Part shown: piece by piece, positions 32,397-56,156 of the stretch
How the letters are laid out: each line of letters opens with the position of its first letter
Numbering within the stretch: the first letter of the stretch is position 1
DNA from: Selaginella moellendorffii
Lineage: Eukaryota > Plantae > Lycopodiophyta
DNA: 64,000 bases
Assembly: GCF_000143415.4 (NCBI RefSeq)
Contig: NW_003314293.1
Coordinates: 1,432,457-1,496,456, forward strand
Direction of reading: 5' to 3'
Position numbers and translations under genes: made by a program
The notes under the pieces: generated by a model
What the model saw: only the letters and a program-made list of their open reading frames with translations
Told to the model about the DNA's origin: nothing
Database searches by the model: none

Positions 32397-32652
32397 TTCC
32401 TCTCCTCCATTAGATACTCTGTCCCGAGGATATTCTCTACTACGTGGCGAACGCGCAAGCTCGAGTACGGCAAGAAGTGTACGGTAGACCACAACAGATC
32501 TCCTGGCAAATAGAAAGAGTTATCCGATAACCAAGAACACTAAATGTCATGAAACTTACAAGAGCGATGGTTATTTCCAGTGATCGTCTCGTTGATGAAT
32601 CGATGGAAAAAGAGCTGCAAAAAGATCGAGGCTTGCGAGCAGGAGAAAGAAT

Positions 32653-33417: not shown

Positions 33418-35674
33418 TGAAATTGCCCGCCCAAAAAGAAAAACCCTTGATTCAAATGACTAGGGCTCTTTACGGCTATGGCGTCAATGGCGCGCGCTTC
33501 GTTGGGGAATGATATTAAGTGATTTCTCTAAGTGTGACTAAGAGCTAGCTTATTCAAGGCCCCTTACACTTGGATGGATCATACTATCCAGCGGGATTTC
33601 TCACAGTGTAACTTAGATGAAGTTTATATTACTCACCTTTATGGAAAAGTTGGAATTTCAGGTTGTTTTATTATTTGCATATATGTAAATATATAATACT
33701 CTTATATGAAATTATATATTTGTTGCCAGGTTTCAGTACATTTAAAAAGATCATTAGTTAATTTTGTGAAGAGAAGAATTAAAAATAAATGTAAAAATAG
33801 ATGTAATAATCACAATGGTGAAGAATTTTAAATGACATAAAATATTTGTTAAAAACTTTTAAAATCTAATTTTATTTTTGGTATGATTGGTTAAATAAAT
33901 CATGTAAAAGAAATTACAAAATTGTGCATACGTTATGTTGGTATATCTAATTTGAATGTTTTAGGAAAGTTTAAAGTTGAAAAGAAAATTAAAATTTAAT
34001 AAAATTGTGATTGGTATTATAATGTCAGTTTAAAAAATTTAATAGAAGAATTTAATAAAGTATACTATGTTATAATTTTAAACTATAACAATTTCAAATA
34101 TAATAGAATGGTGATTTCCATGTAACTATAATTTTTTATTTTTTGGATTAAAAGTGAGCTAAAAAAAACTTTGTTTTATTTTTTTTTTACACAATTATAT
34201 GTAATAAAATCTAAACATATGGGAGAGCATTGGGTGGAAACTCTTGCTATGTAGGAAAGTCAACTATTTTTTGTAACCCTTGTTTATTAATAAAAATTCA
34301 AAACATACAAAAATTACATCAATGAATGGAAAAAATTTGAGAAAATAGTAAATTTTGGTAAGTGTTTTGCTAAACTTTTTGCACACTGCTCTTTTGCTAT
34401 ATTATGCACTACCCAAAATATAAAAACTATTATTTTATTTCAATTTAACTTTTAAGCCCATTTAAAAGCCTAAAGAATAATAAAAATAATCCCTTTCAGA
34501 GATTGTGTGAATTTAGATTTCAAATTAATAAAATAATAATCAGTTATAACTATTTAAATTTTAAATTTATTATTTATAAAATAAAAAGTACTTTATTTAG
34601 ATCTTTATTGATTTTACAAACAAAAAAAGACAAAACATAGCAAAACAATTATGTTTATGCCTAAGGCTAAAATGTTAACCAAGCATTCCTAATTTTCTTT
34701 ATTCTTTATTATTAAAAATACTTATTTATTGTTAATACCAATAAAAAATTTATTAATATAAAAAAATTACTTTATAAAAAGTTTATTAAAAATAATTAAT
34801 CTAAAAATCTATTTTAGATAGATGAACAGAGGTCTGTCATGGAGATGTTCAGGCTAGATGTGTACACCAGCCTGGCAAGGACCCCTCATCTGCCAAGGAC
34901 TTAAGACTGAACTCCTGGCACACAAAGCTTCACCGAGCTAGAGATGGTGTTCTACTTGTGAATGCCTGGCTCCATGAATTGGAGAAAGGAACTTCGGCTG
35001 TGGAGTGGAAGGATAAGCAGTTGCCTGGCAGCGATTCTGGCATCGCCAGAGCAGTGAGCGAGAAATGGGAAGAACTCACGTTCATCAAAGGAGGATAAGC
35101 GTGAAATCATGGAAAAACATTGGAGCAGGTGCAACAGCTCTTGGATGGTGATCACCAGCAGCGCATTCACGACCAGAGTTCCGTGCTGTAATCCTCGAGT
35201 CGTTTTCGTGTTTGACGAGGCAAGGGGTTTGAACGAAACCCGCTCGAGGTTTGTTTCCGTGGAATGCCAGCTTTGCGCTGGACTCAACCGCGAAGCTTTT
35301 GCCGAGAAAGAGCAACGAGGACAACAGCAGCTCGCCGAGAAAGTGCGGCGAGGACAGGCGAGCCGTTTTCGTGTTTGACGAGGCAAGGGGTCTGAACGAA
35401 ACCTCAGCTCCGCTGGGCGCTCAGAGTTTTGTTTCCGTGGAATGCCTACTTTGTGCTCATGCTGGACACAACCGGGAAGTTTTTGCCAAGAAAGAGTGAC
35501 GAGGACAACAGCAGCAGGGCCTTGAAGACCGGGAGATGCTTACTGCCTCCGATCTACTTCTTGCGAACTTTGCAACTAAACATGCTCAAGTTGAGCGTTG
35601 CGGAGTATAGTTCTTCGTCAACCTGGATGAAGTATGGAAGGCCTGTGTGGGCCGCCAGAATAGGATAGGGTGAA

Positions 35675-36517
35675 ATGGGAATTAGTAATGAGTTCGCCAG
35701 ACAGAGAACCAAGGATGGTATTGTTTGCTGCTGCAACAGGCCTGCAGGTGTGTCCTCGCTGCCCGATGGTAGCGTCACATATGAATGTTACGATGGAAAA
35801 CAGGTTGTTTGTCGCTCTTCCAGCGACGCCCAGCTACTAGCCTGCTCAAGTTCAAGAAGTGAAGCGGTATGCTTAGCTGGTACCTTCATCCCATCAAAGT
35901 GGTGGTCCCCTGTTCTGCAATTCTTTTGCCGTGCGGGAAGTCCCGGAGACTGCAGCGTTAAGCAGATACTTTCCAGGAGGCCTTGCTATCGGGTATCAAG
36001 CGGAAAACGATATGCGTGGTGCCGATCTCATTCTTCCTGTCTGGACTCCCGAGGGGATGACTTGCTGCGTTGTGTCCCTGAAGACAAGGGGCGGTGTCTC
36101 ATCCGAGCTCACCAAGTGGAAAGTTCTTCCTGTGGTTACCGTGTATGTCAATGCAAGGAGCAAGCAGTTGCGGACGCAAAGTCTTGGCTTCTGTGGGATC
36201 AGGAGGAGGATAAGAGTGATCTCCAGCTGACATGCTATGGCCTTGATGGCAACTTCGGTTACCTGTCGAGGGGCCTGCTCAAGAACATACTCGTAACCAG
36301 GCGGGATCCCCTTAAAGGTGCGGGAAGCCGAGTGGATCAAGCAAATGCTGACGTTTCAGTACGAGGCAGACTTCGTCGTGTCTCCGGCGGCATGAGTCTA
36401 TGCTCATGGATTACTCGTCTTCACGGAGAAGTTGATCTCTTTAAGTTCGAGTTAGAACTTGCTCTATCTCGTACTCTTGGTTCAATTAACGGTGATCGGA
36501 GCTCGAAGCAATACTAG
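35675..36517 (+). CDS. Hypothetical Cys-rich protein, possible GRF-like zinc-finger N-terminus
   Basis: Intact 280-aa ORF with CCCNRPA...YEC...C; two decayed copies in the duplicated arms. Confidence 0.45.
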   Translation: MGISNEFARQRTKDGIVCCCNRPAGVSSLPDGSVTYECYDGKQVVCRSSSDAQLLACSSSRSEAVCLAGTFIPSKWWSPVLQFFCRAGSPGDCSVKQILSRRPCYRVSSGKRYAWCRSHSSCLDSRGDDLLRCVPEDKGRCLIRAHQVESSSCGYRVCQCKEQAVADAKSWLLWDQEEDKSDLQLTCYGLDGNFGYLSRGLLKNILVTRRDPLKGAGSRVDQANADVSVRGRLRRVSGGMSLCSWITRLHGEVDLFKFELELALSRTLGSINGDRSSKQY

Positions 36518-36903
36518 TTCGCTGCTTACGCTTTGCTCTCTCTGCTGTTACTTTGGCTTGATTTTGGATCTACTCACGAAAGAGAAGCTACCAGGTATGC
36601 TTAGTAATGTTCGAGCTCGACCTTTATTATTTTGTAGATTACTTATGGTGTCATAGCTCTTTCTTTCTTGTTCTTTTTTGTAACTCGCGGATGAGATCCT
36701 AAACATAGTATACAACGAAAGGTTTATTGCAACTTCTAGAAAAAGATTCGGTATGAACCATATGAGACAGCCGTTCATCTTCTATTCCTCAAGAATAGAA
36801 CAATGGTTGTCTCTTATGTTTCCAGCATTGACTGGAAACTTCTCCAAAGCAGTCCTTCCGGTAAGTTTGCTTCAAATATCAGTAGATTCTTTGACGTGAG
36901 ATC

Positions 36904-38738
36904 ATGGCCAGTTTTCCAGTTTTGACATGTTTCTTCTTTTTCTTGGCTGCTGCAGCGATGGAGATATTTTACTAATAATAACCTTTTACACATGTAGAAA
37001 TTCACTTCACGAACACCAGTTCTCCTCCGGTGATCTACTAACACGAACGAGACGATTTCATTCTTCCTGCATCAAAAAGTTCCAAGAGGTGGGCTTATTT
37101 ATACAACCCGATTTTTTTGTCGTAATACACTTGATGTATCCAGGATTCGAGAGTATTTTCTCAGAAATACTATGAGCTCCTACTTTCAGCCTCGGCAAGG
37201 CCCAATCTTTCTTGTCATCTGTGTTTGATTAGAAATCTCTTGCGAAATCATTGGAAGGGGCAATCGTGACTGTCGAGCATCAGTATTACGGAGACTGTTC
37301 TCCCTTTCAAAACTTCACTTATGAGAATCTTAAGTTTCTCACGACGCAGCAAGCTTTATTCCAACTATCAGGCATTAAGTGGATGATGATCTTACCGTGT
37401 GATTTCCGTTTTCTTATACAGAACTTGATTATTCAACGATATAACAAGCAAGACAAGAATCCATGGATTGTTGTGGGAGGTGCCTTGAGTGCGTAGTACT
37501 GAAATTCCCGCACTTGGTTGCTGCAAGCTGGGAAGCTCAGCCGTGGTCCAAACAATCTTGGAATACAGTGATTATGACGAGCAAGTATGTTTACTCACGC
37601 CAAAGCTCGCTCATGTTTCTTTGTTTCTCTTGTAGATTGGAGTTTCTGCTGGTCCCGAATGCAAGAAAGAATTACAGGAGATTACAAAGCTGGCCGAAGA
37701 AGGCCTGGTAGCAAATTCAGCAGCCGTTAAATCCATGTTCTCTGCGGAAAAGGTATTGTCTTTGGAGTTCCTTCGTTTTTACTTGTGAACACTACATTTG
37801 ACAGCTTAAAGGTGATGACTTCTATTGCTGATAGCAGACATTGGAGCTGGTTTTGTAAGTAAACATCGTGAGAATATTTATACAAAGGTTGACAAGCATT
37901 TTGTTTATGCTAGGTGCAATATGGTAGATTTGATAACCTTTGTGCTGCACTTCTGGAAGCTGTTCAGAACAAAACAGACCTTCTGGTAACTTTTCTTTCA
38001 TAAAGGTCAAATTTTTTGCTTTTTTTTTAGAGGGCGTTTGCCAATCTTCTGAGCCTGAATCGTTCTTCCGTTGAACTTTACGATGCAAATGAGCTGAAAA
38101 GGCGAGCTGAAGCAAACGATATCGGTGCTATAAACTCTATGAGCTATGCGTACCAAGTTTGCACAGAATTGGCCGCCTTCCACGTTTCTCCGGCCAACGA
38201 CGGCATTCGGCTAAACCTTAGTAAGTTTGTTCGTGTTTCACTCTTTCAAAGTATGTGCCTTAGATGTTTTTCTTACAATTAACAGGTAATTCATCGACTA
38301 CTGGAATTTTTTGGCCACGAGACATTCCCAGAGTCAAAGCTTCAAACGAGAACTATGGAGGATGGGATATTGCTGGTAATTAATTCGTTCTTTCTTTTGC
38401 TGGCTTGATCCTGGTCTTTAACAAGCATGCTCTAGAATTATCTTCCTGAATGGCTCACAGGATCCACGGCGTGTCAAAACAAACTTTCTCTCCTTATGGT
38501 AACTTATTGTTTTGCTTCGAAGACTTTAAACAAAGATGAATTCACAGAGCCTTTCTTTATATTAACGTGTAAGAACTGCGCACACTGCCAAGACCTTTGG
38601 CCAGAATGTACCATAGAAACTGGTATAACTTCTGTAGTAATAATTTTTGTATACCCTGTTTTTAACATTGGATTCGATTCTCAGATCTAGGCCCACGCAT
38701 TTATATCTTTGTACATGAAGGAGTGGCTTTCCTCGTAG
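36904..38738 (+). pseudogene. Serine carboxypeptidase S28 pseudogene
   Basis: EHQYYG and NPWIVVGG(..)ALSA, with the catalytic SYAG segment deleted; frameshifts. Confidence 0.82.
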
Positions 38739-39432
38739 TACAAAATGATGCTTTGGTTTCAATTAATATGATGATTAGATAAATATTCCCGCCCCCATTC
38801 AAATTGCTAGGGTTTAGGGGAATGGCGGTGCGCTTCCCTCTTTCGGCTTACATCCGGTGCATAGGTTCGTCGATTGTTTCAGATCAAACTTACCAAGCAT
38901 TTGAGGCAGATTTCCGATCCAGAGGCGGCGCTTCGCACGAGCTAGTGATAAAATTATAATGCATGGATCCTATTATTTTTGGTCTTGCGCTCGCAGGAAA
39001 CAAACTAAAACTTGATAAGATTTTTACTTTCTCTCAAGTAGTCACCTCTTCCAGCTTGCTCTTTTTTTTTTCTTTTACAGATCGATGGCAATTACTGGTG
39101 ACTTTGGAACTTCAGGACGACACTAGACTCCGAATATTTCTCAGGTAAGGTCCCTATCATTCATCATTTTTTAACATTAGATCAACATTCTCTCACAGTG
39201 GATAGTCAATCAAAAGAAACAAGAGTGTTGCTTGGACGGAGCTCCATTCGTCAAATAATAGAAAAGATTCGCTGTAAAACATATGAGACAGCCGTTTGTG
39301 TTCTATTCCTAAAAGAAAACAACAAAATCTGTTGCCTCCTATGCTTCCATCATTGACATGAATAACAGTTTCGGAATTGTCAGCATCCCGGCAGCTTGCT
39401 TCAAATATCAGCAAATCGAGGTTCGTTTGATC

Positions 39433-41470
39433 ATGGCATTTTTCCCAATGCTGACATGCGTGTTCTTTCTCCTGGCTACTGCAGCAACTACATGCTCTGC
39501 TTTGGGTTGAAGAACTTCAATCCACCAACAGCGTCTATTTTCTGCTGCATCTGCAAACTTAAACAACACGAGCCAGTTGTTCCAGAAGCAAAGAGTTAAC
39601 CATTTTGATCCAGAAGTAGGACCTTGCATTTTTTATCTGGTGGTTATAGCGTTTGATTGATCCAGGATTCGAGAGTCTTCTCTCAAAGATACTTCGAGTT
39701 CCTGGATTACTTTCAGCCCCAACAAGGCCCAATATTTCTCGCCCTCTGTGGAGAATCCACATGCGGCGGCGGATATCAAAGAACAGCTGTAGGAGTAAGC
39801 GTCTCACATCATAACGTTTCATCCTTTTATCCAATTTGATGCAAGCAGGCTCTAGCTAAGTCACTAGGAGCGGTAGTCGTGACAATTGAGCATCGGTATT
39901 ACGGACAAAGCTATCCCTTTCAAAACTTCTCTTACAAGAACCTCAAGTATCTCACAACACAGCAAGCTTTATATGATTATGCTCTCTTTATCGACTATTA
40001 TGAGGTAGATAAATATCTCGAACGTGTTTTCTCGTGATCTTAACGTTCTTTGGTACAGAACTTGGTTAATCTACAATATAACAAGCAAGGCAAGAATCCA
40101 TGGATTGTTGTGGGAGGTTCATACGCAGGTGCCCTGAGTGCTTGGTTTAGACTGAAATTTCCGCATTTGGTCGTTGCAAGCTGGGCAAGCTCAGGTGTGG
40201 TCGAAGCTGTGCTGGAATATAGTGCTTACGACGAACAAGTACGTAAATTTACTTTGAGATTTCCTGTATTTATCCTTCTTTGTATGTAGGTGGGAATTTC
40301 TGTTGGTCCTGAATGCAAGAAGGCATTACAGGAGATCACAAAGCTGGCTGAAGAAGGTCTAGTAACAAACGCAACAGCAGTTAAATCTGTGTTTTTTGCA
40401 CAAAAGGTATTTCATCCTTTCTAAATCGTTTCTCTCAAAGGCTTAAGACTTGCGAACTTCGCACAGCTCAGAGATGATGATTTCCTGTCATTGGTAGCAG
40501 ACATTGCCGCTGGTTTTGTGAGTAGAAAGCTTGAGAATAACATAGTTTTCATTTAACGAGCTTTATATTTTTTCCGTTTTATTTTTTGTTAGGTGCAATA
40601 TGGTGCTATTGATATGCTCTGTCCTCCACTTTTGGAAGCCATTCAGAACAAAACCGATCTCCTGGTAATTTGCTCCTCTTTCATGAGTTCTATACAAGTC
40701 ACGACTTCATTGTTTTTCCAGATGGCATATGCACGTATTGGTGGAGTAGATAGCTCCTCCAGTGACTCTTACGATGCATATGAACTGAGAAGACAAGCTG
40801 AAGCAAACGATATCAGCGCTAAAGACACTATGAGCTGGAATTACCAAATTTGCACAGAATTAGCTTACTTCCAAGTTGCCCCTACCAACGACAGCATTCG
40901 ATCATCACGTATAAATCTCCAGTAAGTTTGTTTTCCCTTTTCCCTCTCAGCTTGAGTGTGACTTCATGTTGCTACGTGTTAGATATTACATCGACATTTG
41001 TGCTGTATTGTTTGGTCCCAACACATTTCCAGATGTTAGTGCCGCAAACTGGAACTATGGAGGGCGGGACATTGCTAGTAAAATATTTTCTTCTTCATGC
41101 TGCCTTGCTCTGTTCTAATCTTGAATAACAGGTTCTAGAATTATCTTTCTGAATGGCTCACAGGATCCGTGGCAGCATGCATCGAAGACGACATTTTCTC
41201 CAGGAGGTAAAACGATAGGGCAGCGCTTTTATGCTTAGGAGATTTACAATGATTTATTTTTCCCATAGAACCCTCCTTTGTATTAACTTGTGAAAGCTGT
41301 GCACACTGCGAGGACCTTTCTATGGATTGTAGTTCAGACATTGGTAATGCTTTGATACATGACCACCCTTGCGTTTAACTTTGATTTTCTCAGGATCACC
41401 CAGGTGCCAGGAGCTAATGAAGGCCCACACCTACATATCTTTGTACATGAAGGAGTGGTTTTCCTCGTAG
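39433..41470 (+). CDS. Serine carboxypeptidase S28 (prolyl carboxypeptidase-like), full exon set but premature TGA at codon 26
   Basis: Signal peptide; FSQRYF, IEHRYYG, GGSYAGALSAWFRLKFPHL, WNYQICTELAYFQ, NGSQDPW and AHCEDL motifs; TGA at 39508-39510. Confidence 0.85.
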
Positions 41471-41611
41471 TTAATGGCGTTCTCTTCGCGAGGGCAAACA
41501 CGATTCATGGCAAACTTTCGTAATTTCTGCTTTGAGCTTTCGAAGTTCTTCTTGTGGTACGTAAGATTTTAGCATGGAAGAAAAGAGAAACAGAAAAGAA
41601 GAAGGCTTTGG

Positions 41612-42060
41612 TTTTAGTCGTTGTCGTCATGATGAATTTCGACAGGCAGATCCACCGGCAGCAAGACGCTCTTGCTTCGCTGCTTTGTGGAGTTCCCCTC
41701 TCTCTCGCCTTGTCCTCGGATCTCCAAGAAGAACGCCATTGTAGCGTGACGGCTCCCCTGGCGTCTCCACACACCTTGACGACGCCCAAGTTTCCGATGG
41801 AGTCCTGGTGAAAGTATGTATTTGATCTCCAACGAGTGTCCAGTTTTAAGTTAGAAGAGGAAATGTATGATTCGCAAGGAGTTATTTTACCGGTTTGAGA
41901 AACTCGTTGAGTCGAACGTTCTCAGATGCTTGTCCGTGACCAACTTCTTGAGGAAACACTCCTGGTTCATGAGCTGGAGAAGTTCCTCCTGTTCCTCCTG
42001 CTCGGATCCTAAAGAACATCCACACTCTGCAAGTTACCTTGCTCCATGATCTGTTTTGTA
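41612..42060 (-). pseudogene. Relic of a WWE-ART gene
   Basis: HATMAFFLEIRGQGE...VLLPVDLPV and LQLMNQE segments homologous to 44560-45594, with large deletions. Confidence 0.75.
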
Positions 42061-42474: not shown

Positions 42475-44400
42475 ATGAAACATTGTTCTTCCTCCTGGCT
42501 ACTGCAGCAGCTACTTGCTATGCTTTGGGTTGGAGAAGTTCAATCCACCGGCAACATTTCTCTTCCGCTGCATGTACAAACGCAAACCATATTAGTTATT
42601 TTTTCCAGAGTCAACCATTATGATCCAGAAGTACGTCCTGCATTTCTTATCTAGTGTTATATAGTTGATCTAGGATCCGAGAGTGTTCTCTCAAAGATAC
42701 TTCGATCTCCTGGATTACTTTCAGCCCGATATTTCTCGCCCTCTAGCCATTTTCAAGCTTATGTCGCATCTCTCATTATAGGATTTAGCATCCTTTTTAA
42801 TCGATTGTTATGCAAACAGCGGCAATCGTTTGAGCATCGTGGAGAGAGCTATCCCTTTCAAAATTTCACTTGCGAGAACCTCAAGTATCTCACAACACAG
42901 CAGGCTTTGTTTGATTATGCTCTCTTTATCAAGTAGATAAATATCTAGAGCGTGCTTTCCCGTGATTTTAGCACAGAACTTGACGATAAAGCAAGCAAGG
43001 CAAGAATCCATGGATTGCTGTGGGAGCTTCATACGCAGGTGCCTTGACTGCGTGGTTTGGACTTAAATTTCCGGACTTGGTCGTTGCAAGCTGGGCAAGC
43101 TCAGGTGTCATCAAAGCTGTGCTGGAATATAGTGCTTACGATGAACAAGTATGTAAAATCACACTGAAGTTTTATCTTGTTGCCCCATAGGCACTCTGTT
43201 AGTGTATGATGTTCACCACCCAACCGTATAAGCACTAGAACCTCTCCCAAGACTTTAGATGCTGTGGATCTCTAAAGATATTTATGATTATTTTTTTAAG
43301 TAGGTGGGAATTTCTGTTGGTCCTGAATGCAAGAAAGCATTACAGGAGATCACACGGATGGCCGAAGAAGGTAGCAACAAATGTAATAACAGTTAAATCT
43401 CTGTTTCTTGAAAAAAAAAAGGTATCGATTGCTTCTGTTCTCTCGTTTTACAGCTCAATGACGTTGACTTCCTTTCTCTTGTAGCAGACGTTGCAGCTCC
43501 TTATGTGAGAAAAGAGCTTCATTCGATCCTAGATTGTACTTAACATCTTGTCCCATATTCATTTTATTAGGTGCAATATGGTGGCATTAAGTTGCTTTGT
43601 CCAGATATTCATAACAAAAGCGATCTCCTGGTAATTTTGCTCTTCTCTCATGTATACAAGTGACGACTGTATTTTTCCAGGTGGCATATGCAGGCAGATG
43701 GGGAATAGATTCCTACGATGTATATAAACTGAATAAACAGGCTGAAGTAAACGATATCGATGCTAAAGACACTATGGGCTGGTCCTATTAAACTTGCACA
43801 GAATTGGGATACTTCCAAATGAATGCTGGCACACACACGCACCCCTTTCTTTTAGAGGAACCATGGCCTCCATAAGCTTTCAGGAATCGATTAAAAATTT
43901 GGTGTAAAGTATTTAGCTCCAAGGTTGTAGGCTTGAAAGAAGGGGAAAACAATTCGATCATCACGTATAAATTTCCGGTAAGTTTGCATTTCCTTTTCCC
44001 TCATATCTTGAGTATGCCCAAGAAGCATTATGAAGGTCCTTGCAGCGTGCACAGCTTTCACAAGTTACTACAAAGAAGATTCCGTGGGAAAAAATAAAAC
44101 ATTGTACTGATCTCTCATTTTAGCCTGTGGAGAAAATGTCATCTTTGAAGCATGCTGCCACGGATATCATAAAGATAACGATTACTCAAGAAGAACAAAC
44201 TTACCAGCAATGTCCCGTCCTCCGTAGTTCCTGTTTACAGCACTAACATCTGGAAATGTCCTGGGACCAAACAAATTATTGATGACCAGCAACAAAAAGA
44301 CACCACCCTTTTGATCCTCTCAGGAGCGCCAAAGTGTAAAGAGCTAATGAAGGCCCACGCGTACATAGATTTGTACATGAAAGAGCGGCTTTCCGCGTAG
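42475..44400 (+). pseudogene. Serine carboxypeptidase S28 pseudogene with an internal inversion
   Basis: Homologous to 39433-41470 with indels; ~44032-44274 is reversed. Confidence 0.8.
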
Positions 44401-44559
44401 TTGGTTCTCTTTGCAACATTCATCCCAGGTTTTCATTTGAGCTTTCTTGTGTTTCTAATATTTTTTTTCTTTTAGACACGAACAAAAGGATGACAGAAAC
44501 GTCAAATGTGGTATGTAATGTTTTACCATGAAAGAGAAGATACAGAAAAGAGAAAAGCT

Positions 44560-45594
44560 TTAGTTGTCGTCGTCGTCGTCGTAGTCGTCGTCATCGTCGT
44601 CATAGTGATTTTCTACAGGCAGATCGATCTCCGCCACCGGCAGCAGGACGCTCGACTTTGTGTTTGGAATGCTGCGCTGCTTTGCGGTGTTCCACTCGGT
44701 CTCTCCATGTCCTCGGAGCTCCAGGAAGAGCGCCATTGTAGCTTGACGGGCTCTCGTCTTGCAGTACTGCAGGCTCACGTACGGATCTTTCCCGACCCAA
44801 AACTTCCTGGTGTCTCCACACAGCTTGGCATCCAATCCATTCTTCTTGATGGATTCCAAGTTCTCGGATGGAGTCCCGTGAAAGACGTACTCGAGAGACT
44901 TGAGCTCCGAAGAGTCTCCTTGCTTGACAGCGCAGAACATCTCCACTGCGACCACATGTAAGTTCTAAGTTCGAAGAATGTATGATCATTGACAACTTAA
45001 CTGATGAGCTCTTTGTTGGTCTTGGCGGTTTCCTTGAGAGCTTGGACGAACTGGCGGTACATATCGGGCTTATCGGCCAGAAACGTGTTGAGTCGAACGT
45101 TTCTTATCTCTGGATGCTTTTCCGTGACCACCTTCTTGAGGAAACTCTCCTTGTTCATGAGCTGGAGAAGGTCCTCGACTGCGTGCTCGATTGCTTGGTC
45201 CTCGGGATCCTGGAGAAAAAGCAGGAAACTGGAGCTTGCGAAAGAACAAAAGAGTTCCAACTTTTACTTTTCCGATGATCTTGATCTCCCGTCGATAGCC
45301 ACTCCGCAAGTTAACTTGCTCCATGCGCTCCAGATCGATCTGGTAGTCAAGTCCATTGGGATACTTCGCTGAGGTGATCCTTCCCAGAGAAACATTCGAT
45401 GCTCGTCCCTTGGAGATCTATCAAACAACAAAACTGGAAACCTATTGCTAGAACGCAATGACATAGCAGACCTTGTTCTTGTGAGCGTCACGAATGGCAT
45501 GCTCGGTGCTTGCGCTGTATCGTACCCAGCAATCGTCCTCCCTCCAGTAAACTCCAGCCTCAGTGGGATCGGCGCACTCCTTGGTGATACACAT
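44560..45594 (-). CDS. WWE-domain + minimal PARP-like ADP-ribosyltransferase-fold protein (4 exons)
   Basis: Spliced: MCITKECADPTEAGVYWREDDCWVRYS...|...YQIDLERMEQVNLRSGYRREIK (WWE)|DPEDQA...|EYVFHGTPSENLESIKKNGL...FWVGKDPYVSLQYC...LLPVAEI, then an acidic tail. Confidence 0.75.
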
Positions 45595-45806: not shown

Positions 45807-48189
45807 ATGAGGATCGCCGTGGTCAACTCTGATCGTTGCAAGCCCAAGAAGTGCCATCAGGAATGCAAGAAGAGCTGCCCAGTGGTGAAAACAGGCAAAT
45901 TTTGTTCTCATCTCTTGAAAGGTATGCGATCTGAGATTCGAATTTCCAGGGAAGCTGTGCATCGAGGTCTCTCCGGCATCCAAGATCTCGTCCATTTCGG
46001 AGGAGCTCTGCATTGGATGTGGGATTTGCGTGAAGGTCGGCCACTTCGATTCCCCCTTCCCGTCTTGTTTCGATCTGTGGTTTGTGTGGCAGAAATGTCC
46101 ATTTGGAGCGATAGATATCATCAAGCTGCCTAAGGAGTTGGACAAAGAAACCACGCATCGGTATGGAGCGAACACTTTCAAGCTACACAGGTTTGCTTGG
46201 TTTTCTAGATGCGTAGTACTAGTGTTCTCGTAAACAGGCTGCCTGTTCCAAAGCCGGGCCAGGTCTTGGGTCTCGTTGGGACGAATGGAATTGGAAAGAC
46301 AACCGCCTTGAAAGTTCTTCACGGGTTCCTCAAGCCCAACTTGGGGAACTTTGCGGTACTGGCTTTTGCGGTATTTGTTTTGTTCCTATGACAGTGTTAC
46401 GTTGTAGGATCCACCGGACTGGCAAGAGATCTTGACATACTTCAGAGGATCGGAGCTCCAGAACTACTTCATGCGATATCTGGAAGATAATTTGAAGGTA
46501 TGGGAACAGGACTTGGTTTCAAGTCATTTCTTAACGAAGCCTGTTGCCTCAGGTGGCCACGAAAACGCAGAACGTTTCCGACGTTCCGAAGGTAATTAAA
46601 GGCACCGTCGGTGAAGCTCTCTCGCGGAAGGATGAAAGAGGCGTGATGGAGGATGTCTGCCATGATCTTGATTTGATCGATGTCTTGGACCGAAATCTGG
46701 ATGATTTGTCTGGTGGAGAGCTCCAACGCTTTGCTATAGCCGAGGTGGCCGTGCAAAAGGCAGACGTCTACATGTTTGATGAGCCATCCAGCTTTCTGGA
46801 TGTTCGGCAGCGGCTCAAGGCTGCTCAAGTCATTCGGTCCCTTCTCACACCAAACAGGTACATGTTTTTTTCGACTCTTTTCCTTCTTGGTTTCCCTCGT
46901 TCCCCTCGACTTACTCTGAGGTTGCAATGCAGCTATGTGATTGTCGTGGAGCATGATCTGAGTGTTCTCGACTATCTATCGGACTATGTTTGCTGCCTCT
47001 ATGGAAATCCCGGCGCGTATGGCGTTGTGACGCTCCCTTTCTCTGTGAGGGAAGGCATAAACATATTCCTCGCTGGATACATTCATACGGAAAACGTGCG
47101 GTTCCGTGAAGTGTCCCTCACGTTCAAGGTAAGAATTGTTTTCGCTAAGTTGCAATTAAAACGGGGATTATGTCAATGCAAGGTTGCTGAGAGCGCTCAA
47201 GAGAGCCCCGAGGAAGTCCAGGCGTACACTCGGTATAAGTATCCTGCCATGTCGAGGACTCAAGGAAGTTTCAAGCTTCAAGTCAAGGAGGGGGACTTTA
47301 CAGACTCGCAGATCATTGTGATGCTCGGCGAGAATGGCACTGGAAAGACCACTTTCATAAGAATGCTGGTAAGTTTCCAGAACTATTTTCTCGTGACATG
47401 CAAAGCTTTTCTATAATCTCAGGCTGGGCTGCTAAAATCCGACGACGACTCTCGTGACTCGGAAGAAATTCCCGAGTTCAACGTCTCATACAAGCCACAA
47501 CACGTCAACTCCAAGTCCCAGTCCACGGTCCGGCATTTGCTGCACACCAGGATCCGGGACTCGTGCTTTCATCCTCAATTCAACACGGACGTGATGAAGC
47601 CTCTCCAGATTGAGGCACTCATGGACCGGGAAGTTGCCAACTTATCGGGTGGAGAGCGCCAGCGCGTTGCTATTTGCCTTTGCCTTGGAAAGGTAGTAGC
47701 GCTTTTCCTTGAACTTATCCTCGTAGCATATCTAACCATTTGCCTTGGCAGCCCGCGGACATCTATCTGATCGACGAGCCCAGCGCTCACTTGGACTCCG
47801 AGCAGCGACTCGTGGCGTGCAAGGTGATCAAGCGCTTCATCCTCCACGCCAAGAAGACGGCCTTCGTGGTGGAGCACGACTTGATCATGGCAACGTACTT
47901 GGCGGACAGGGTCATCGTCTACGAAGGAAAACCGTCGGTGGAGTGCGTTGCCAACTCGCCCCAGAGTCTCCTCACGGGGATGAACCTGTTCCTCTCGGTG
48001 AGTAGCGTGTTCTCTCTCCTTCTCCAGGCGTTCATGGCTGATTTGATTCCACTTTTTCGCTTCGCGCAGCACCTGGACATCACCTTCCGGCGTGATCCCA
48101 CGAACTTTAGGCCGCGGATCAACAAGCTCGACTCCACCAAAGATCGCGAGCAAAAGGCTGCCGGATCTTACTATTACTTGGACGACTGA
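45807..48189 (+). CDS. ABCE: ABCE / RNase L inhibitor (ribosome recycling ATPase), multi-exon
   Basis: Fe-S CKPKKC...CPV and [13 protein letters not shown]; Walker A GTNGIGKT and GENGTGKT; LSGGE twice; ends GSYYYLDD*. Confidence 0.96.
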
Positions 48190-48769
48190 GCAGTCCGGTT
48201 TGCTTCTGTAAAGGTTTGAAACGAAAATGTGTTTATTATATGGTTACTTACACGCCATTTGCTTTCGCTGGAACAGTACTCTCGATCTGGAGGTTCGTTT
48301 TGTGGAGCTCGAGTTGTACGCACGCTGGAACACTACTTCTCTCTCTGTTGGTTCGTTGTTTAGAGGTCCGAGTGACTGATCTCGCAAGAACAACAAAAAG
48401 AAGAAAGAAGAGCGAAAACAAAACTGTAAATCGACAGGCGACTTTAAAACATCCCAAGAGCTTACCAGAAGACGCCGTCCCATCGCAACTACCATAAACT
48501 TCTCCATTTGGTCGAAAGAAGCTAGCAACGTACTCTCGAAAACGGAAAAACAGAAGGTAGAAACAAAAATGGTGGCGAAGATCAAAGAGCTGTCCAAGGA
48601 TGTCAAAACACAATTAAAGAGAGAAATGCTTCAAAGCTTACCGTAGCAGCCATAAGCAGCGATCAATCGATAGAAGAATTTGCGAACAACCAATCGAGGG
48701 AACGAGAGAGCAAGGACGGAGAAGACACCGCCAAAACGAAAGACCCGACGAACGAAAGGAAGAAAGGAT

Positions 48770-49867
48770 CTAGAGGATGCTACAGCCGCTCTGGCAGCAG
48801 CGGGAGCACCTACAGCACTTCTGGTACCAGCGCTGATGGGGGTGTGGCGGTGGCGCCGCGGGTGGCGCTCCTGGAGAGCTTGGAGGAGGAGAGAAAAAAC
48901 TGCCAATGTTGCCAATGACAGTAACAACTGACCCGGTGGATGATTTGCCGCTGCCGGTGGACTCGCTTTCCTCGATCAGTATCCCCTTGCCTTTGTCGTC
49001 GGCGCTCGCGATCGGGGTCGGGCCAGCGCGTGACAGACGCGACGGACCATGGAGCAATCCACCCGGGCCGGTGATCTCCGAGACTGGGACCTTCGGAATC
49101 GAGACTGAGGCGATCGATGAGCTCGGACCTGGAAGACCAGAGCTTGCGGCAATCGGATCCTTGCCTGGAGACGCGCTGGATGAGCTTGGATCCTTTGGAA
49201 TCGCGGTCGATGAGCTCGGACCTGGTGCTGTGGCAACGGACGAGCTCGGATCCATGCCTGGAGACGACATTATGGCGCTGGATGAGCTCGGATTCTCTGA
49301 AATCGCGGTTCCGGCGCTCGATGAGCTCGGACCTGGAAGACCAAAGCTTGCCGTGACACTGGACGAGCTCGGATCCGATATTATGGCGCTGGATGAGCTT
49401 GGATCCTCCGCGATCGCGCTGGATGAGCCCGGATCCCCTGAAATCCAAGGCGTGGCACTGGACGAGCCCGGATCTCCGCCCTGAGTTGATATTACGGCGC
49501 TGGAGCTGCTCGGACCCTCCATCGGCTCCTTCCCGCGATAGCAAACTGCGTCGCTGGAAGTGCTCCTGGGATCAGACCTGCGGAACGTTGGAACCTCGGC
49601 TATGGCGGAATCGCTGGGACTCGAAGCAATCAACCTAGAATCGCTGTTAGACCTGGTAAATGCGGCATGCGGAGTAGCGGGACTAGGCGGAGGAGCGACA
49701 GGACCGAGAACGGGAGATGGAAAGAGCCTGGCGATCATCTGGAGATCCTCATTGCGCACTGGCACCACCGGCTCGGGCGGCGCCGCTGGCTCGCCATTGT
49801 CTCCCTCGCTATCGTTGCCCTCTTCTTGCCGTTGCTGCCGGCCAGGATCGGGAGGTGGAGGACCCAT
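48770..49867 (-). CDS. Ser/Pro-rich repeat protein with Cys-rich CaaX C-terminus (CSIL)
   Basis: 365-aa ORF with PSSSSA repeats and DKGKG, ending CCRCSRCCQSGCSIL*. Shares its upstream sequence with 32653-33417. Confidence 0.75.
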   Translation of the reverse strand: MGPPPPDPGRQQRQEEGNDSEGDNGEPAAPPEPVVPVRNEDLQMIARLFPSPVLGPVAPPPSPATPHAAFTRSNSDSRLIASSPSDSAIAEVPTFRRSDPRSTSSDAVCYRGKEPMEGPSSSSAVISTQGGDPGSSSATPWISGDPGSSSAIAEDPSSSSAIISDPSSSSVTASFGLPGPSSSSAGTAISENPSSSSAIMSSPGMDPSSSVATAPGPSSSTAIPKDPSSSSASPGKDPIAASSGLPGPSSSIASVSIPKVPVSEITGPGGLLHGPSRLSRAGPTPIASADDKGKGILIEESESTGSGKSSTGSVVTVIGNIGSFFSPPPSSPGAPPAAPPPHPHQRWYQKCCRCSRCCQSGCSIL

Positions 49868-49957
49868 TGGAAATGCCCGCCCAAAAACCCTTGATTCAAA
49901 TGACTAGGGCTCGTGCTATAATGTTTTATAGTCTTTTAAATTAATTATATAGAATAA

Positions 49958-50031
49958 GGCCTATTAGCTCAGTTGGTCAGAGCGTGGTGCTAATAACGCC
50001 AAGGTCGCAGGTTCGAAACCTGCATATACCA
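49958..50031 (+). tRNA. tRNA-Ile(AAU), probable pseudogene (3' acceptor strand mutated)
   Basis: Identical to 56083-56156 except that it ends tatacca instead of tgggcca. Confidence 0.75.
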
Positions 50032-50103
50032 TTGTTTTTTCTTGCAAAGGTCGCTGGCTCAAAATCTTTTAACAGCAAAAGAATGTGAGGGCTCCAGGAA
50101 GGG

Positions 50104-51129
50104 ATGGTTTTGCTACGGATGGTTTTGCTATGGATCGTTCTTCTCTTCTCCTCAAAGATCTGTCAAGCTGATCGGAATGGTCTCACGCAAGAAAAGATTC
50201 AAGCGGCTTTCGTGGGCGATGATCATCGCCTAGAGGTATCTCTCCCGAATCTTTTCTCCTTTGGAAGTTTTACTCTTGCATTGCATTCCAGGAAGAGGAG
50301 ATTATTGCCGAGATTGTGCTTGGAGGAGTGGCAAACCAAGACGAAGAGGTGCGTGTATCTATCTTAATCCTGAGTGTCACGATCCAGAGTTTCTTATATT
50401 CAGGTGGATGAATTCTTCCTTGTGGACGAGGTATGGAGCCCTGTTTCTCAGGATCAATGCGCAACTTACGTTTTCTTTTGCTCCAGGTGGAAGATTTTTC
50501 TTTTGAGGAGACAAAGGTACTTGAGCTTAGCTTTTCGAGAGGATCACTGAACTTACTACCGGGCTCTCCAGGTAGAAGAAATCTCTCCAGGAAAAGAGGT
50601 ATGAGTTTCACTATACCGAAACTTAACCGGGAGATCTATTCTTTTTGTTTTTTCTGTTTCCAGGTGGAAACGATCGTTGTACGTGAAGATGAGCCTGTAT
50701 TGTTGCCGTATGTCTGTACATGGGGGCTCATACTTCTAGGAATTGTGTTGGCGAAGAAGCTCTTTTTGAGGATTCGAGCTCGGGGGAGCAAGGATCACAA
50801 ACTTCCAGTCGAAAGCTTCAAGCCCCCAGTGGCCCCAGTGGATATTTCAGTCATTGAAACCTTTGGTGAGATCATAGCGGAAGCTCTGTATAAGGTAAGA
50901 GCTCCTCTTTCATCCTTGGACTTGCTAATAGGATTTTTGGGAGAAGAACACCAGCAAGCTCTCCGAGGAGGCTGTGCGAGGCCTAAGTAAAGAAAAACTT
51001 TGCGAGGTGAGAAGCCACTTAAAATCTAGTACAAACGCTCGTCTTGTTCATTTCCAGGTGATCGGAAGAAGAAAGGCCGAGAGGATTGCCCGCAGATTTT
51101 CCAGGGCCTTCATCGCCAAGTATTGGTAA
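50104..51129 (+). CDS. Orphan type-I membrane protein, 8 exons including microexons
   Basis: Signal peptide exon 50104-50235; further exons 50292-50348, 50404-50430, 50487-50516, 50572-50598, 50664-50894 (TM), ~50932-51006 and 51058-51129. All introns GT-AG, phase 0. Confidence 0.65.
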
Positions 51130-54100
51130 ACGCACTCGTTAAGAAAGGTTTAAGCTTTCAGTCGTTTTCTTTCATACATTTTCAGATGAACAAGCAACAA
51201 GGAGGTGATCTTCCTTCGTTTTCTCTTGCTTGATAGTTGAGAGCAAGACTTAAAATCGTCGACGTGGTTGCATGAGTGCGTGCTAAGATACCCAATGGAT
51301 GTAAGCTTACATAACAGAATTCCTCAAACCTAAATTTTGCAAACAAAAACCACACAAGTACAAGTCCTGAATTTTTCATCAACAAATTTCTGATATATGA
51401 GTAGAAGTTTAAATTTGATTCTTGTCATAGTTAGTAGTGGTAAATATACTCTTCTATGAAAACAAAAAGATGGTGAACTAGTTGGGATCTTAGCTTTGTT
51501 GGGCGAGATAGTACACCAAAGAATAATAGATTATTTAAGATATAATATTAATACATTCATGAACAAACTTATCACTTATTTGTGAGGACACTAAAATTAG
51601 AGAGAATATATGTTGAAAAAATTCTCAATAGTTCCTAACAACAAACTGTTATGGATCAAAGATGAAACATTAATTATAAACATAATATTAGATTCATTTT
51701 TTAAAAGCAAGTTTTGAAATATAATTATATGGTGAGTGTGACACAGCCACAAATGCGCCCTATGGCCACTTTACACTTTTTTCCTCATGGGGCTCATATA
51801 ACGCCAACCATTAGATTACACATATATTTAGTTTCTCATCCTATTAGAGTAAAAGCTTTTTACTAGCATGCATACTAAGTAACAAATGTTACTTTTATGT
51901 GTTGATAGTGTAATTATATTATTTTTATAATTTTGAATATTTGTCTTCAATATTTGCTTTTTATCTAATATTTATATTCATGCATTTTCTGGGTAGTGTT
52001 TAAAATTTAACTTATTATATTATGTTTCATGAACATTATTTCTGAATATGTTTTTATTGAAATAATGCTAATGCAAAATATAATTATCATCTCTCTATTT
52101 ATAATTTATATTTATTTGAATTTAAGTCTTTATACCAATATCATTAAGAGCTTCAATTTTAATAAGAGATGAAAGATAAGGTTTTACTCCAATATTAAGG
52201 TCTCAATGTTAAATAATCTTTTCTTTTATGAAAAAAACTATAATTATTAGAAAATTCAAATATGATATATAAATAAACTTAATAATACTAAACAATCAAT
52301 TGATGATGAATCACATTTCTTTAGATTATAGTTTACTATATTGTGTGGCTATTGTACTAAAGTTATCTCAATCATTATTATTGCTTATTATGTTTTTTTT
52401 ATGTATTAAAAAGTACTTATGCTGTGGTGCTGCTCATGCACCGTGAGCAAGCAAAGCAGCCATAGAACCCTACGAGTGCATAGTGTAACACCTGTCACCA
52501 CGCCCTCTTCTCTTCCCGGCCACACATGCATCCTGCCCATTGGCCACCATAACATTGAACCAATATTCTAGTTAACCATGGCCACCAACCTTGGCCAGGT
52601 CTGGGGTGGCCTCCCTTTTCTGAGAACCATTGCTTCCCAAAGGTGCCTTGGGCCTGGGATCGGACGGCTGTGGGGGTCTGAGCCCTTCATTCTTATTACT
52701 ATAGATACATAATATATTAATGTAAAAAAAGTGTTAAAATATATGATATTATAAAATTCTTAAACTAAATCTAAGTCAGCCAACAATTAAACATAATTAT
52801 ATTCAAAGATGACTGTATTAATAAGTAACATAAGATTATTAATAAAATTAATTGTAATTTACAAAACAAAACACATATAGCTCTTCAAATTTTCTATTTT
52901 ATATTATGGAATACATAGTTTTCTATAATAACATTGTATGTGTAAATTAAATAATATAAAATTAATAAAATACTCTTTTCTCATATGCAATTTAAAATAT
53001 CATATAAATTTTAGGAATAATTTTTTTTTTCAAAATTTTAAAATTCTAAATAATTTTACTCTAAATTCATCATTTGAAGCTTAATTTCTTGAGTAAATGT
53101 AATTAAAATTCCATTTAATTTGATTATTCCTCTTAATTGTAATCTTGTATAGAACTTTAACCTTATTAAATTTTAAAAGTTTAGAAAACGAACTTCCTGC
53201 CCTGGACCTGGAGCTCGAATATCTAGAGCTTTCTGCCCTAGAGTTGGAGCCTTTAACTGTATAGCTGCAATATTTTTAATATATATACATCATTATCCAC
53301 TACATATAATTATCTATTTTATTAACATATAATAATTTAGTCATATAGAGGTTAAATGATAAAAGTTTAAACTCTTATTTTAGAATGGTTATTTTGATTA
53401 TGTGTCATGATTCTATCATAAAGAATTGATAATTTGTATATGATATCACATTTACATTAATAATAAAGTTACTCTAGAGTTAGTTTATAATCAATTTTTA
53501 ATTATATAAACTTCCAATTATTTATGTTAATTATGTGAAGGCAGAAGTAAAAACAACATGTATGGATAAGCTAACATTATTATTCTTAGTGTTATTGAAC
53601 TATTATCTACATTTCTTTATAATATTTAAAATTAGTGAAAAACAATATATTATTTATTTTGTAATTTATTTTTTGTATATTTTTATTATCTTAGTGTGGT
53701 CAGTAGTGTTTCAATAGCATTATTAAGATTTCTATAAAAATAGTTGTACCATTTATAGTTGGAGACAGATATCCCAATAATAGGGTTTAAAATTAAAGCA
53801 AAGGTTGAATATTTGATAACATTATATTCTTATATTCTTGATTGATATATTAATAGAACTATAATAATAATTATTTCTTATAAAAACATAAATATAATTT
53901 TATATATTATATTTCTATTTTAACATTTTCTTTTGTAATTTATTAGGAAATAAATATAATACAAGACAAGTCACTACTTCTATCATACAAATAATTTGAA
54001 TTGTGTATATAAATTAAATATAAAATATTAGGTATGTAACTTTTCTTGTGCCTCATGACATTTTTCACAAAAATATTAAATTTATTTTAAAAAATCTACA

Positions 54101-54717
54101 AAAATATTAGTTAAAATTTTAGAGATTACATGTAAACCATATAATACAGGAATAATTAGTGAAACTTTTTTAAAAATTATAAAACATAATTATGTGATTT
54201 CCTTAAGGAAACTATTTGTTATTTTAATAAAATTTAATTATATATGTGTAATGAAATCTTTCAAAGACATTGAAGTTTTTTTATTCAAGTAATTTTTAAT
54301 CTTAATAAAAGTTTAAAATTTAATCATAATAAAATATATTACATATACTTTTAAAATGTTTTAATTTAAAAAATGTTAAAGTTATTAATTATAAATTCAA
54401 GAAAAAAATCTTAAATGACACTATTTATCCCATAGTTTCTAGATGATGGTTCGAAATTATTTAATTAAATTATTGAAATGTTTTGACATATAATCCTTGT
54501 CTATTCAGTTGAGTTTATCTTCTGCTTGCAATAATTATAATCTAACTCTAACTAGCTCACACAATCCTTATGATTTTAGAACATGGGAGCATACATCACA
54601 AACTTCCAGTCTAAAGCTTCAAACCCCCAGTGGATCATTGAAACTTTTAATTCGGTGAGAGATAAAATAACTGGTATGTATACGTGATCATCCTTGCATG
54701 ATATTTGAAAGCAAGAC

Positions 54718-55812
54718 TTAATAATCGTCGTCGCTGCTGCTGTATGAGTATCTGTTGGAATGTTCCGACCGTGAGTAATTGCTGGATGGTTTTAGTGATG
54801 AGGTTGTGGATGCTAACCACCAGGGAACTGGCACATCAACCTCCGCCACTGGCAGTAAAACGCCCGACTTGGTATTGGGAACACTCCGTCTGTTAAGATC
54901 CCAGGTACTCTCCCCTTGTCCTCGCAGTTCCAGGAACAGCACCATGGTCGCGTGAGAAGAAGCTACTTCTCTGCAGTATTCGACGCTCACTTCGGGAGTT
55001 TTTCCGACCCAAAACTTCTGGGTGGAGCCGCAGAGCGTCGCGTCCAGTCCATTTTTCTCGATGGATTGTAAGTTTTTGGATGGAGTTCCGTGAAAGACGT
55101 ATTCGAGAGACTTTAGCTCCGAAGTATCGGCCTGCCTGAGAGCACAGAACATCTCCACTGTGACATGGTTGTTAAGAAGAATTGCTTGTATGGCTAGATT
55201 TGTATAGAGCCTTACTGATAAGTTCTTTGTTGGTCGTGGCAGCCTCTTTAATGAGTGCTCGGACGAACTTGCAGTAGATTTCCGGCTTGTTGGCAAGGAG
55301 CTTGTTGGCTCGAACGTTTTTGATCTTTGGGTGCTTGTCCATGATCACCTTCTTGAGGAAACTCTCCTTGTTCATGAGCTGGAGGAGCTCCTCAACTGCA
55401 TGCCCGATCGCTTGGTCCTCGGAAGTCTGGAAAGAAAAAAGAAGATCAGGAAGTAAGAGAATTCGAAGTATACAATCGCATCGCTTCCAATTATCTTGAT
55501 CTTCCGGCGATAGCCACTTCGCAGATTGACTTGCTCCATGTGATCCAGATCAATCTCGTATCTCCTTCCACTGGGATACTTTTTCGAAGTGATTCTTCCA
55601 AGGGAAATTCTTGATGCATACTTGGAGGCCTGGGATTCAGCAAAGCCATGCAAATCACTCAATACTTTCTCGCAGTCCTATCAAACCTTGCGCTTCATGC
55701 GAGCACCACGAATGACATGCTCGATGCTTGGGCGGTATCTCACCCAGCAGTCATCCTCCCTCCAGTAAACTCCAGCCTTGGTTGGATCCGCGCACTCCTT
55801 GGTGATACACAT
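54718..55812 (-). CDS. Second WWE + minimal PARP-like ART-fold protein
   Basis: Same exon layout: MCITKECADPTKAGVYWREDDCWVRY; YEIDLDHMEQVNLRSGYRRKIK; EYVFHGTPSKNLQSIEKNGL...FWVGKTPEVSVEYC. Confidence 0.75.
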
Positions 55813-56082
55813 TCTTTTGCTAGAGGTCTAAAATAGCGATCACACACATTATATTAGAAGTAACTAAATTTATAACAATTATAAACCATTGAGTTAAAAA
55901 TATTGTTTACATAAATTAGAGAAAATTTGGTTTAGTTAATGTCAAAACAGAAGTTTACGCCAAGGTCATAGGTTCGAAACCTGTATGGGCTACATTTTTG
56001 ACCTACACTTTTTTCGTTCATTTCAAAACCTTATTACAGAAACTTTGGTTTAGTTAATGTTAAAACAGAAGTTTGCATGTAA

Positions 56083-56156
56083 GGCCTATTAGCTCAGTTG
56101 GTCAGAGCGTGGTGCTAATAACGCCAAGGTCGCAGGTTCGAAACCTGCATGGGCCA
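56083..56156 (+). tRNA. tRNA-Ile(AAU)
   Basis: ggcctattagctcagttggtcagagcgtggtgctAATaacgccaaggtcgcaggttcgaaacctgcatgggcca, followed by a T-run terminator. Confidence 0.95.

Follow-up and report, generated by a model that had tools for sequence, protein, structure and literature searches.

A probable WWE and ADP-ribosyltransferase-fold gene overlooked in the annotation of Selaginella moellendorffii

Does the lycophyte Selaginella moellendorffii carry a compact gene in which a WWE domain is joined to an ADP-ribosyltransferase (ART) fold, and could the product of such a gene still transfer ADP-ribose? The question is raised by a 64,000-nucleotide stretch of contig NW_003314293.1 (positions 1,432,457 to 1,496,456; the whole stretch is called the window here, and coordinates refer to it unless stated otherwise), on the minus strand of which a sequence-only reading had proposed a hidden family of spliced genes. 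Descriptions of plant ADP-ribosylation usually centre on PARP1-3 and the inactive RCD1/SRO proteins, to which bryophytes add Clade 6 PARPs. Comparative sequence evidence indicates that the locus at 45594-44560, hereafter gene A, truly codes for a protein in S. moellendorffii and has been overlooked by public annotation, and it is highly probable that it encodes a WWE domain together with an ART-fold domain. That its product works as a WWE-guided mono-ADP-ribosyltransferase is a more tentative proposal, to which we assign a probability of roughly 0.4.

Gene A consists of four minus-strand exons whose frame stays open across the joins, giving a 288-aa open reading frame (ORF) interrupted by three GT..AG introns. 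Exon 1 (45594-45472, 41 codons, with the ATG at 45594-45592) is separated from exon 2 (45417-45268, 50 codons) by intron 1 (45471-45418, 54 nt), which interrupts the WWE domain; intron 2 (45267-45210, 58 nt) leads to exon 3 (45209-45002, 69 codons plus 1 nt, phase 1), a linker that the sequence-only reading had taken to be helical and that matches no Pfam family; and beyond intron 3 (45001-44946, 56 nt) lies exon 4 (44945-44560, stop codon 44562-44560), which supplies the ART-fold core (44943-44608, exon-4 residues 1-112) and an acidic tail, Asp-rich in translation (44607-44563). All motifs expected in the product were seen, namely YWREDDCWVRY, YQIDLERMEQVNLRSGYRREIK, FHGT, NLESIKKNGL, FWVGKDPYVSLQYC, LLPVAEI and the Asp-rich tail, and its C-terminal end reads DDDDDDYDDDDDN. 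The four minus-strand exons and the length of ~290 aa proposed by the sequence-only reading are thus borne out, and they are supported by a paralog within the same window.

This paralog, hereafter B, lies 10 kb from gene A (55812-54718, minus strand), encodes 310 aa and has the same exon structure (exons 55812-55687, 55629-55474, 55426-55216 and 55157-54718; introns of 57, 47 and 58 nt), with intron positions coinciding throughout except for the intron-2 donor of B, which is 12 nt off. The N-terminal 11 residues, MCITKECADPT, form a two-Cys N-terminus ahead of the WWE match and are identical in gene A (45594-45562, minus strand) and B (55812-55780, minus strand); directly after them, the B allele of the other haplotype (haplotype 2, GL377610.1) has M instead of K. 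The C-terminal tail is Ser-rich in B and Asp-rich in gene A. In an alignment of the two loci, nucleotide identity is 72-85% in the exons, 41-48% in the introns and about 35% in the flanks. Part by part, exon 1 is 85% and exon 3 80.6% identical, against 47.5%, 44.8% and 41.4% for introns 1, 2 and 3, and the exons bordering intron 1 are 73-85% identical. Every exon indel between the paralogs is a multiple of three. Over the four exons, non-synonymous divergence (dN) is 0.187 and synonymous divergence (dS) 0.850, giving a dN/dS of 0.22 (Fisher p=1.6e-19 for synonymous versus non-synonymous changes), and all four pieces remained stop-free in only 0.06% of neutral copies simulated with substitutions only, at half of the A-B neutral divergence.

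Considering the contrast between exons and introns together with the dN/dS of 0.22, both the splice model and past selection on the two genes are supported. The haplotype-2 allele of gene A could be compared over exon 1 and part of exon 2 (41 codons), and it is intact where readable, with 3 substitutions in 247 nt (1 of them non-synonymous); its intron 1 carries a 5-nt insertion that keeps the AG and leaves the adjoining exons in frame. The splice model is therefore well supported by comparison (exon versus intron conservation, dN/dS and the intron indel between haplotypes), not by RNA. Since A and B share no sequence outside their coding parts, they are old duplicates rather than transposon cargo.

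Neither gene appears in public annotation. The annotation compared was that of GL377597.1 (GCA_000143415.2), a scaffold whose DNA near the laccase gene is 100% identical to positions 46909-64000 of the window, and it has no gene call between the genes flanking paralog B; on the other haplotype, GL377610.1, there is no gene call at the B locus or over the first two exons of gene A. A phmmer search with exon 4 of gene A against 1.84 billion cluster representatives, a collection that includes the Selaginella proteome, returned 8 proteins (best E=4e-5) and no close one. The missing gene calls and the lack of a close library protein together indicate that genes A and B are unannotated, in agreement with the earlier description of the genes as hidden, and the S. 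moellendorffii annotation thus overlooks a whole small gene family. For lycophytes and streptophyte algae, a full-text literature search found no description of a protein of this kind.

Domain, homology and fold searches were done one exon at a time. The Pfam WWE profile (PF02825) matches exon 1 over profile positions 4-30 (E=0.012, 16.4 bits) and exon 2 over positions 41-66 (E=1.1e-4, 23.0 bits), so that the first half of the domain falls at 45549-45472 (minus strand, exon-1 residues 16-41) and the second half, YQIDLERMEQVNLRSGYRREIK, at 45357-45280 (minus strand, exon-2 residues 21-46). Exon 2 alone passes the gathering cut-off of 21.1 bits, with 23.0 bits in gene A and 25.1 bits in B. Single-sequence searches of the PDB with exons 1, 2 and 4 gave nothing significant; the sole PDB match of exon 2 was the WWE domain of PARP11 (2dk6, non-significant E=1.9), to which it aligns over 25 residues with the motif Y.ID...M.Q.NL..G..R.IK. 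Elsewhere, the WWE module binds ADP-ribose derivatives, for example iso-ADP-ribose in poly(ADP-ribose).

The evidence for an ART domain comes from exon 4. The PARP profile PF00644 matches it over positions 44-113 of 199 in gene A (E=3.8e-4, 20.5 bits) and with E=0.0059 (16.6 bits) in paralog B, and relatives of exon 4 pass the cut-off of the same profile (27-73 bits), all of them matching only its first half. When a family profile made from A, B and these relatives was compared with the PDB, the best matches were KptA/Tpt1 (1.7e-7, spanning profile positions 10-98 of 123), ZAP/PARP13 (2.1e-5) and PARP12 (1.1e-4), followed by PARP15, 14, 16, 10 and 1 and also DarT. Chains of RCD1 and SRO1 were not among the best 60 matches, which held 16 other PARP/Tpt1 families. 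The WWE module, linker and short ART core proposed earlier are thus each found in place, with Pfam WWE in exons 1-2 and both the PARP match and the ART-fold model in exon 4. By eye, exon 3 shows some likeness to a motif of the relatives (I..I...N....W..F), but its candidacy as the N-terminal part of the PARP domain found no support (BLASTP E=8.3, hhalign probability 0.6%). PADLOC models for anti-phage defence gave no matches.

The relatives of exon 4 are a protein of the streptophyte alga Klebsormidium nitens (GAQ83764.1, P0006) and the unnamed metagenomic proteins P0005, P0007, P0008 and P0014-P0017; a word-indexed profile search added only four more un-named metagenomic proteins. They resemble gene A in their short ART core, which contains FHGTP..N..SI..GL, an aromatic residue (Trp in P0006, P0007, P0008, P0016 and P0017), Ser..Tyr-Cys and, at its end, a ..LP/FP.. 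strand; their identity to gene A is only 21-37%, and none has a described function. No WWE domain was detected in these proteins, nor upstream of them on contigs L001 and L002. The view that the protein is lineage-specific is borne out in part only: the ART part has distant kin with the His-Trp-Ser-Tyr-Cys pattern in K. nitens and on metagenomic contigs. On L001 (Logan contig, SRR23617307), two tandem mini-ART copies (1502-1705 and 4478-4633, 3 kb apart) carry VFHGTP..N..SIL..G...DWF..DP..S.GYC, with no WWE-like sequence upstream, which suggests that the His-Trp mini-ART may form arrays elsewhere too.

AlphaFold models were made of exon-4 residues 1-112 of gene A, the first with 7 sequences (predicted local distance difference test, pLDDT, 63.6) and the second with 13 (pLDDT 67.7; predicted template modelling score 0.64). 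With the second model, the best 50 Foldseek matches were all ART folds, including PARP12 at the top (E=6e-3) and ZAP among the best, which provides the structural match to ART folds that the sequence-only reading had anticipated. In a scan of 48,161 PDB representatives with the same model, ART folds made up about 45 of the best 50 matches, and the top 17, with Z 7.2-8.2 and a root-mean-square deviation of 2.6-3.5 A, were all domains of PARPs or Tpt1; in 16 of these 17, 101-112 of the 112 residues were aligned (85 in KptA). Fold searches with the first model agreed with this, although their Z-scores were lower. Because such Z-scores are near the background stated for the tool, the case rests on the specificity and coverage of the matches rather than on the height of Z. 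The models, themselves of moderate confidence, match ART folds specifically, and exon 4 very probably encodes a fold of the PARP/diphtheria-toxin (H-Y-E) class. The Z-scores of tankyrase, PARP16, ZAP, PARP1, wheat SRO1, PARP10, RCD1 and Tpt1 are tied within 1, and structure therefore cannot place the domain among the PARP clades, SRO and Tpt1.

Residues of the putative active site were examined in an alignment of 13 sequences, in which the paralog and its allele are 69-70% and the remaining ones 21-37% identical to gene A. No variation is seen at His22, Asn28, Ile32, Gly36 and Tyr60, Phe21, Thr24, Pro25 and Gly43 are nearly invariant, position 49 is Trp or Tyr throughout, and Ser57 is kept in all but two sequences (codons in gene A, minus strand: His22 44880-44878, Trp49 44799-44797, Ser57 44775-44773, Tyr60 44766-44764). 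A HMMER alignment to ZAP/PARP13 puts His at triad position 1 and Trp at position 2, as the sequence-only reading had suggested for the start of the triad. With reference to PARP1 (His862/Gly863, Tyr896, Ser904, Tyr907 and Glu988), the kept residues are presumably the contacts for nicotinamide and the adenosine ribose. Retention of these His, Ser and Tyr contacts across distant relatives suggests continuing selection on a nucleotide pocket.

Taken together, these features would fit the following way of working. The 288-aa product would consist of an N-terminal WWE domain, a roughly 70-residue linker, a compact ART-fold domain and a disordered acidic tail. The WWE domain would recruit the protein to targets that carry ADP-ribose or to a free ligand of ADP-ribose type, and the ART domain would bind NAD+ in a pocket that keeps the His-Gly pair, Ser and the second Tyr and has Trp at the site of the first Tyr. 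As there is no catalytic Glu, polymer formation would be excluded on the usual rules and mono-transfer would be possible; at most, single ADP-ribose units would be transferred, as in PARP10, PARP11 and PARP12.

The nearest known counterpart of this arrangement is animal PARP11, together with the PARP7/12/13 group (Clade 3E), in which a WWE domain is likewise followed by a PARP domain of mono-ART type within ~300 aa. Gene A and this group have in common the His at triad position 1, the kept Ser..Tyr and the missing catalytic Glu, and PARP12 and ZAP are both the best Foldseek matches and the best PARP matches of the family profile. Unlike the PARP11 group, gene A has Trp for the first triad Tyr, lacks zinc fingers and has a much shorter second half of the ART domain. 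Homologues of PARP7 and PARP11 have been confirmed in vertebrates only (Perina et al., PMC4245714), Clade 3 has no plant representatives (Citarelli et al. 2010, PMC2964712), and the published PARP surveys consulted list the WWE-containing mono-ART clade without any plant protein (PMC2964712, PMC4245714). By analogy, gene A would be PARP11-like in its working, not necessarily by descent, and the two domains may have been joined convergently. A small protein that combines WWE and ART and has the His, Ser and Tyr of the NAD pocket would be a possible writer or reader of mono-ADP-ribose in early vascular plants, and its naturally minimised PARP domain would be useful for structure-function work, although the weight of these points is limited by the missing expression and the broken paralog allele described below.

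A number of observations weigh against the reading of gene A as a working transferase, some of them in the domain itself and others in its expression and alleles. As for the domain, the PF00644 scores of exon 4 in A and B lie below the gathering cut-off of 26.7 and cover positions 42-113 of 199; the fold models are single-exon models of middling confidence, with Z of about 8 near background; and the aligned span in PARP targets is 128-164 residues, compared with 112 here, the region that bears the acceptor loop in PARPs being much shortened. Neither the H-Y-E nor the H-Y-[I/L/V] triad is present, Trp standing for the first Tyr, and no Glu occurs in the candidate strand for the third position (R-S-I-P-N in A, R-S-V-P-N in B).

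These features raise the possibility that the domain can no longer act as a transferase, like those of ZAP/PARP13, PARP9, TASOR and RCD1, and that it serves as a non-catalytic reader or scaffold whose surface, placed beside the WWE domain, would bind NAD+, ADP-ribose or protein. The missing Glu and the Trp at the second triad position fit this explanation, as does the size of the domain, which falls 30-50 residues short of the structurally equivalent range in PARP ART domains; moreover, the inactive ZAP is the second-best PDB sequence match and has the Tyr-Cys motif in common with gene A, and RCD1 is an established inactive plant protein with WWE and PARP-like domains (PMC2848248). However, dead PARP-like domains usually lose the His, the triad being L-H-N in RCD1 and Y-Y-V in ZAP (PMC2848248), whereas His-Gly, Ser and the second Tyr are kept in A, B and their distant relatives, which argues for a retained pocket. 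We consider a purely non-catalytic role possible, if rather unlikely.

Could gene A simply be an RCD1/SRO protein (Clade 2)? Its fold model does match the PARP domains of RCD1 and wheat SRO1 (Z 7.8-8.0); unlike these proteins, it has no RST domain, carries an acidic tail at its C-terminus and is roughly half as large. RST gave no match at E<=10 on exon 4, in line with what had been noted from the sequence, and no sequence conserved between A and B was found downstream of the ORF (35% identity in the 3' flank). RCD1 has Leu where gene A keeps His (PMC2848248), and the Selaginella SRO described in the same paper belongs to group Ic, whose members keep PARP and RST, with no WWE detected in it (PMC2848248). 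Membership in RCD1/SRO was therefore rejected on the missing RST, the lack of downstream conservation and the kept His. The earlier claim of distinctness from this family stands as regards sequence profile and domain content, which are separate, but finds no support in structure, where the Z-scores are tied.

A further alternative comes from the match of the family profile to KptA (E=1.7e-7, the best in the PDB), namely that gene A resembles Tpt1/KptA in function, its minimal ART lobe acting on phosphorylated nucleic-acid ends with the WWE domain as a targeting module. The C-terminal NAD+ lobe of Tpt1 is a minimal ART lobe equal in length to that of gene A (Z 6.3-8.2), and HGTP..N..SI...GL is common to both. 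The N-terminal lobe of Tpt1 carries most of the Arg-His-Arg-Arg catalytic tetrad; gene A, unlike Tpt1/KptA, lacks this lobe and has a WWE domain instead. In addition, PARP10, 11, 15 and TRPT1 are reported to ADP-ribosylate phosphorylated RNA ends (PMC6582358). However, Pfam gives PARP and not PTS_2-RNA for both A and B, the structural Z is tied between Tpt1 and PARPs, and the NCBIfam RNA 2'-phosphotransferase models score far below their cut-offs (12-16 bits over ~25 residues, cut-offs 231-239), on which ground membership in Tpt1 was rejected. A Tpt1-like activity thus appears very improbable, and a WWE-guided mono-ADP-ribosyltransferase remains the reading that we prefer.

As for expression, two stranded RNA-seq runs (X4 and X5, about 12% of the reads of each, tissue not stated) were examined; contigs of X1 and X2 run straight through the introns and thus represent genomic DNA, not RNA. 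Gene A has no spliced or junction reads in X4 or X5, so the spliced transcripts on which the sequence-only reading had staked its gene model did not appear. Its depth is 0 in X4, and in X5 a single read pair falls on its 3' end (44513-44654), in an orientation fitting minus-strand RNA. In the same runs, the divergent neighbour ABCE1, whose ATG lies 212 bp from that of gene A, has a depth of about 20 in X4 (range 8-23) and about 6 in X5 (3-8), with 3 splice junctions. Two thin RNA samples do not prove silence; they lower confidence in a present-day function. With expression off or very low in these samples, a transferase encoded by gene A would act in a particular tissue or condition. The RNA reads also bear on ABCE1 itself: at its first intron (45895-45949, plus strand), they skip 55 nt whose ends are printed CA..TC, and moving the cut by 3 (ambiguity 4) gives GC..AG, the other two introns being GT..AG (57 and 47 nt).

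Paralog B adds to these doubts. In its haplotype-2 allele, exon 1 has suffered a 1-nt deletion, and a deletion of 9 nt has abolished the intron-1 donor (L004:8753-8770 in haplotype 2, GL377610.1, corresponding to 55683-55709 of the window); translated according to the haplotype-1 model, this allele ends after 38 residues and is null. A GT formed beside the 1-nt deletion could in principle allow a shorter in-frame exon 1. The two haplotypes of B differ by 12 non-synonymous and 8 synonymous substitutions, and the exons of B show no more conservation between haplotypes than the sequence around them. With one B allele broken, present-day function is doubtful.

Two decayed copies were found in the window as well. 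Relic 1 (about 42100-41617, minus strand) is a gene-A-like copy in which parts of exons 2-4 and of the 3' flank survive; exon 1 is missing, the copy has several deletions in its interior, and its FHGT region is frameshifted (blastn matches of 41380-41752 to 44310-44749 and of 41898-41988 to 45079-45176). Relic 2 (18537-18818, plus strand) repeats the relic 1 region in inverted orientation with 92% identity and is part of a larger duplicate, in which 17570-18818 matches 42999-41708 (blastn); beside it, 19538-19979 is a copy of the gene A 3' flank that ends exactly at the stop codon of A. The family, of which the sequence-only reading had spoken and which paralog B and the relics confirm, is small and is gaining and losing copies, with two intact genes and two relics within the window. 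The lesions of the B allele, the 12:8 allelic ratio and the nearby relics indicate that constraint may have lapsed, and the pattern is one of birth-and-death evolution with constraint possibly relaxed today. At 50363-50440 (plus strand), a 26-residue stretch, LNPECHDPEFLIFRWMNSSLWTRYGA, is weakly like exon 1 of the family (tblastn within the window, E=0.019) and is either a relic or a chance match; it falls within or beside an annotated gene (50104-51186) whose 211-aa product has no Pfam family.

It might thus be argued that gene A was long functional and is now dispensable, a gene on its way out that is silent and intact, only not yet disabled. The near absence of reads in both runs, the two decayed relics within 64 kb, the allele of B that is broken on the haplotype-1 model and the 12 non-synonymous against 8 synonymous changes between alleles of B, in exons conserved no better than their surroundings, would all fit this account. 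However, the A-B dN/dS of 0.22, two ORFs that are both still open despite a dS of 0.85 and the intact state of the readable part of the other A allele speak against it, and two RNA samples are a thin basis for calling silence. We regard this outcome as unlikely.

A broader scenario, which as a whole we consider improbable, is that gene A belongs to an old streptophyte lineage of minimal His-Trp ARTs, held in common with Klebsormidium and standing outside the six PARP clades, which would have been fused to a WWE domain in lycophytes. It would then be an independent PARP11-like read/write module, used under specific conditions (e.g., infection or stress) and turning over fast in the manner of a conflict gene.

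Besides ABCE1, the neighbours of these genes in the window include two tRNA-Ile genes and laccase, AOX, PPR, F-box and lipase-like genes; the laccase exon has 99% identity to SELMODRAFT_105894. The two tRNA-Ile(AAT) genes lie at 49958-50031 and 56083-56157 (plus strand), and the 3' part and downstream sequence of the second are repeated ~160 nt upstream (55957-56067, 79% identity), where this partial duplication adjoins the start of paralog B. An inverted duplicate with 90% identity (15677-17571 and 20090-22099) holds F-box/At3g26010-like beta-propeller ORFs, one of which, a 457-aa F-box ORF at 20394-21767, is absent from the annotated proteins on record. An element labelled as Cassandra-type (25313-25912) has direct repeats at 25313-25498 and 25717-25912 that are 89% identical; no Rfam match to 5S rRNA at the gathering threshold was found in the whole window. 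A SNORD14 (U14) box C/D snoRNA was detected at 28634-28753 (minus strand, 66.3 bits against a gathering score of 64). Finally, inverted and direct repeats of 3-5 kb with 91-99% identity occupy 22-14224 and 29271-39676 (e.g., 22-5200 paired with 39676-34500 and 2871-5865 with 14224-11239) and are probably young retroelements; AT-rich tracts occur at 10-12 kb, inside these large repeats, and at 52-54 kb, outside them.

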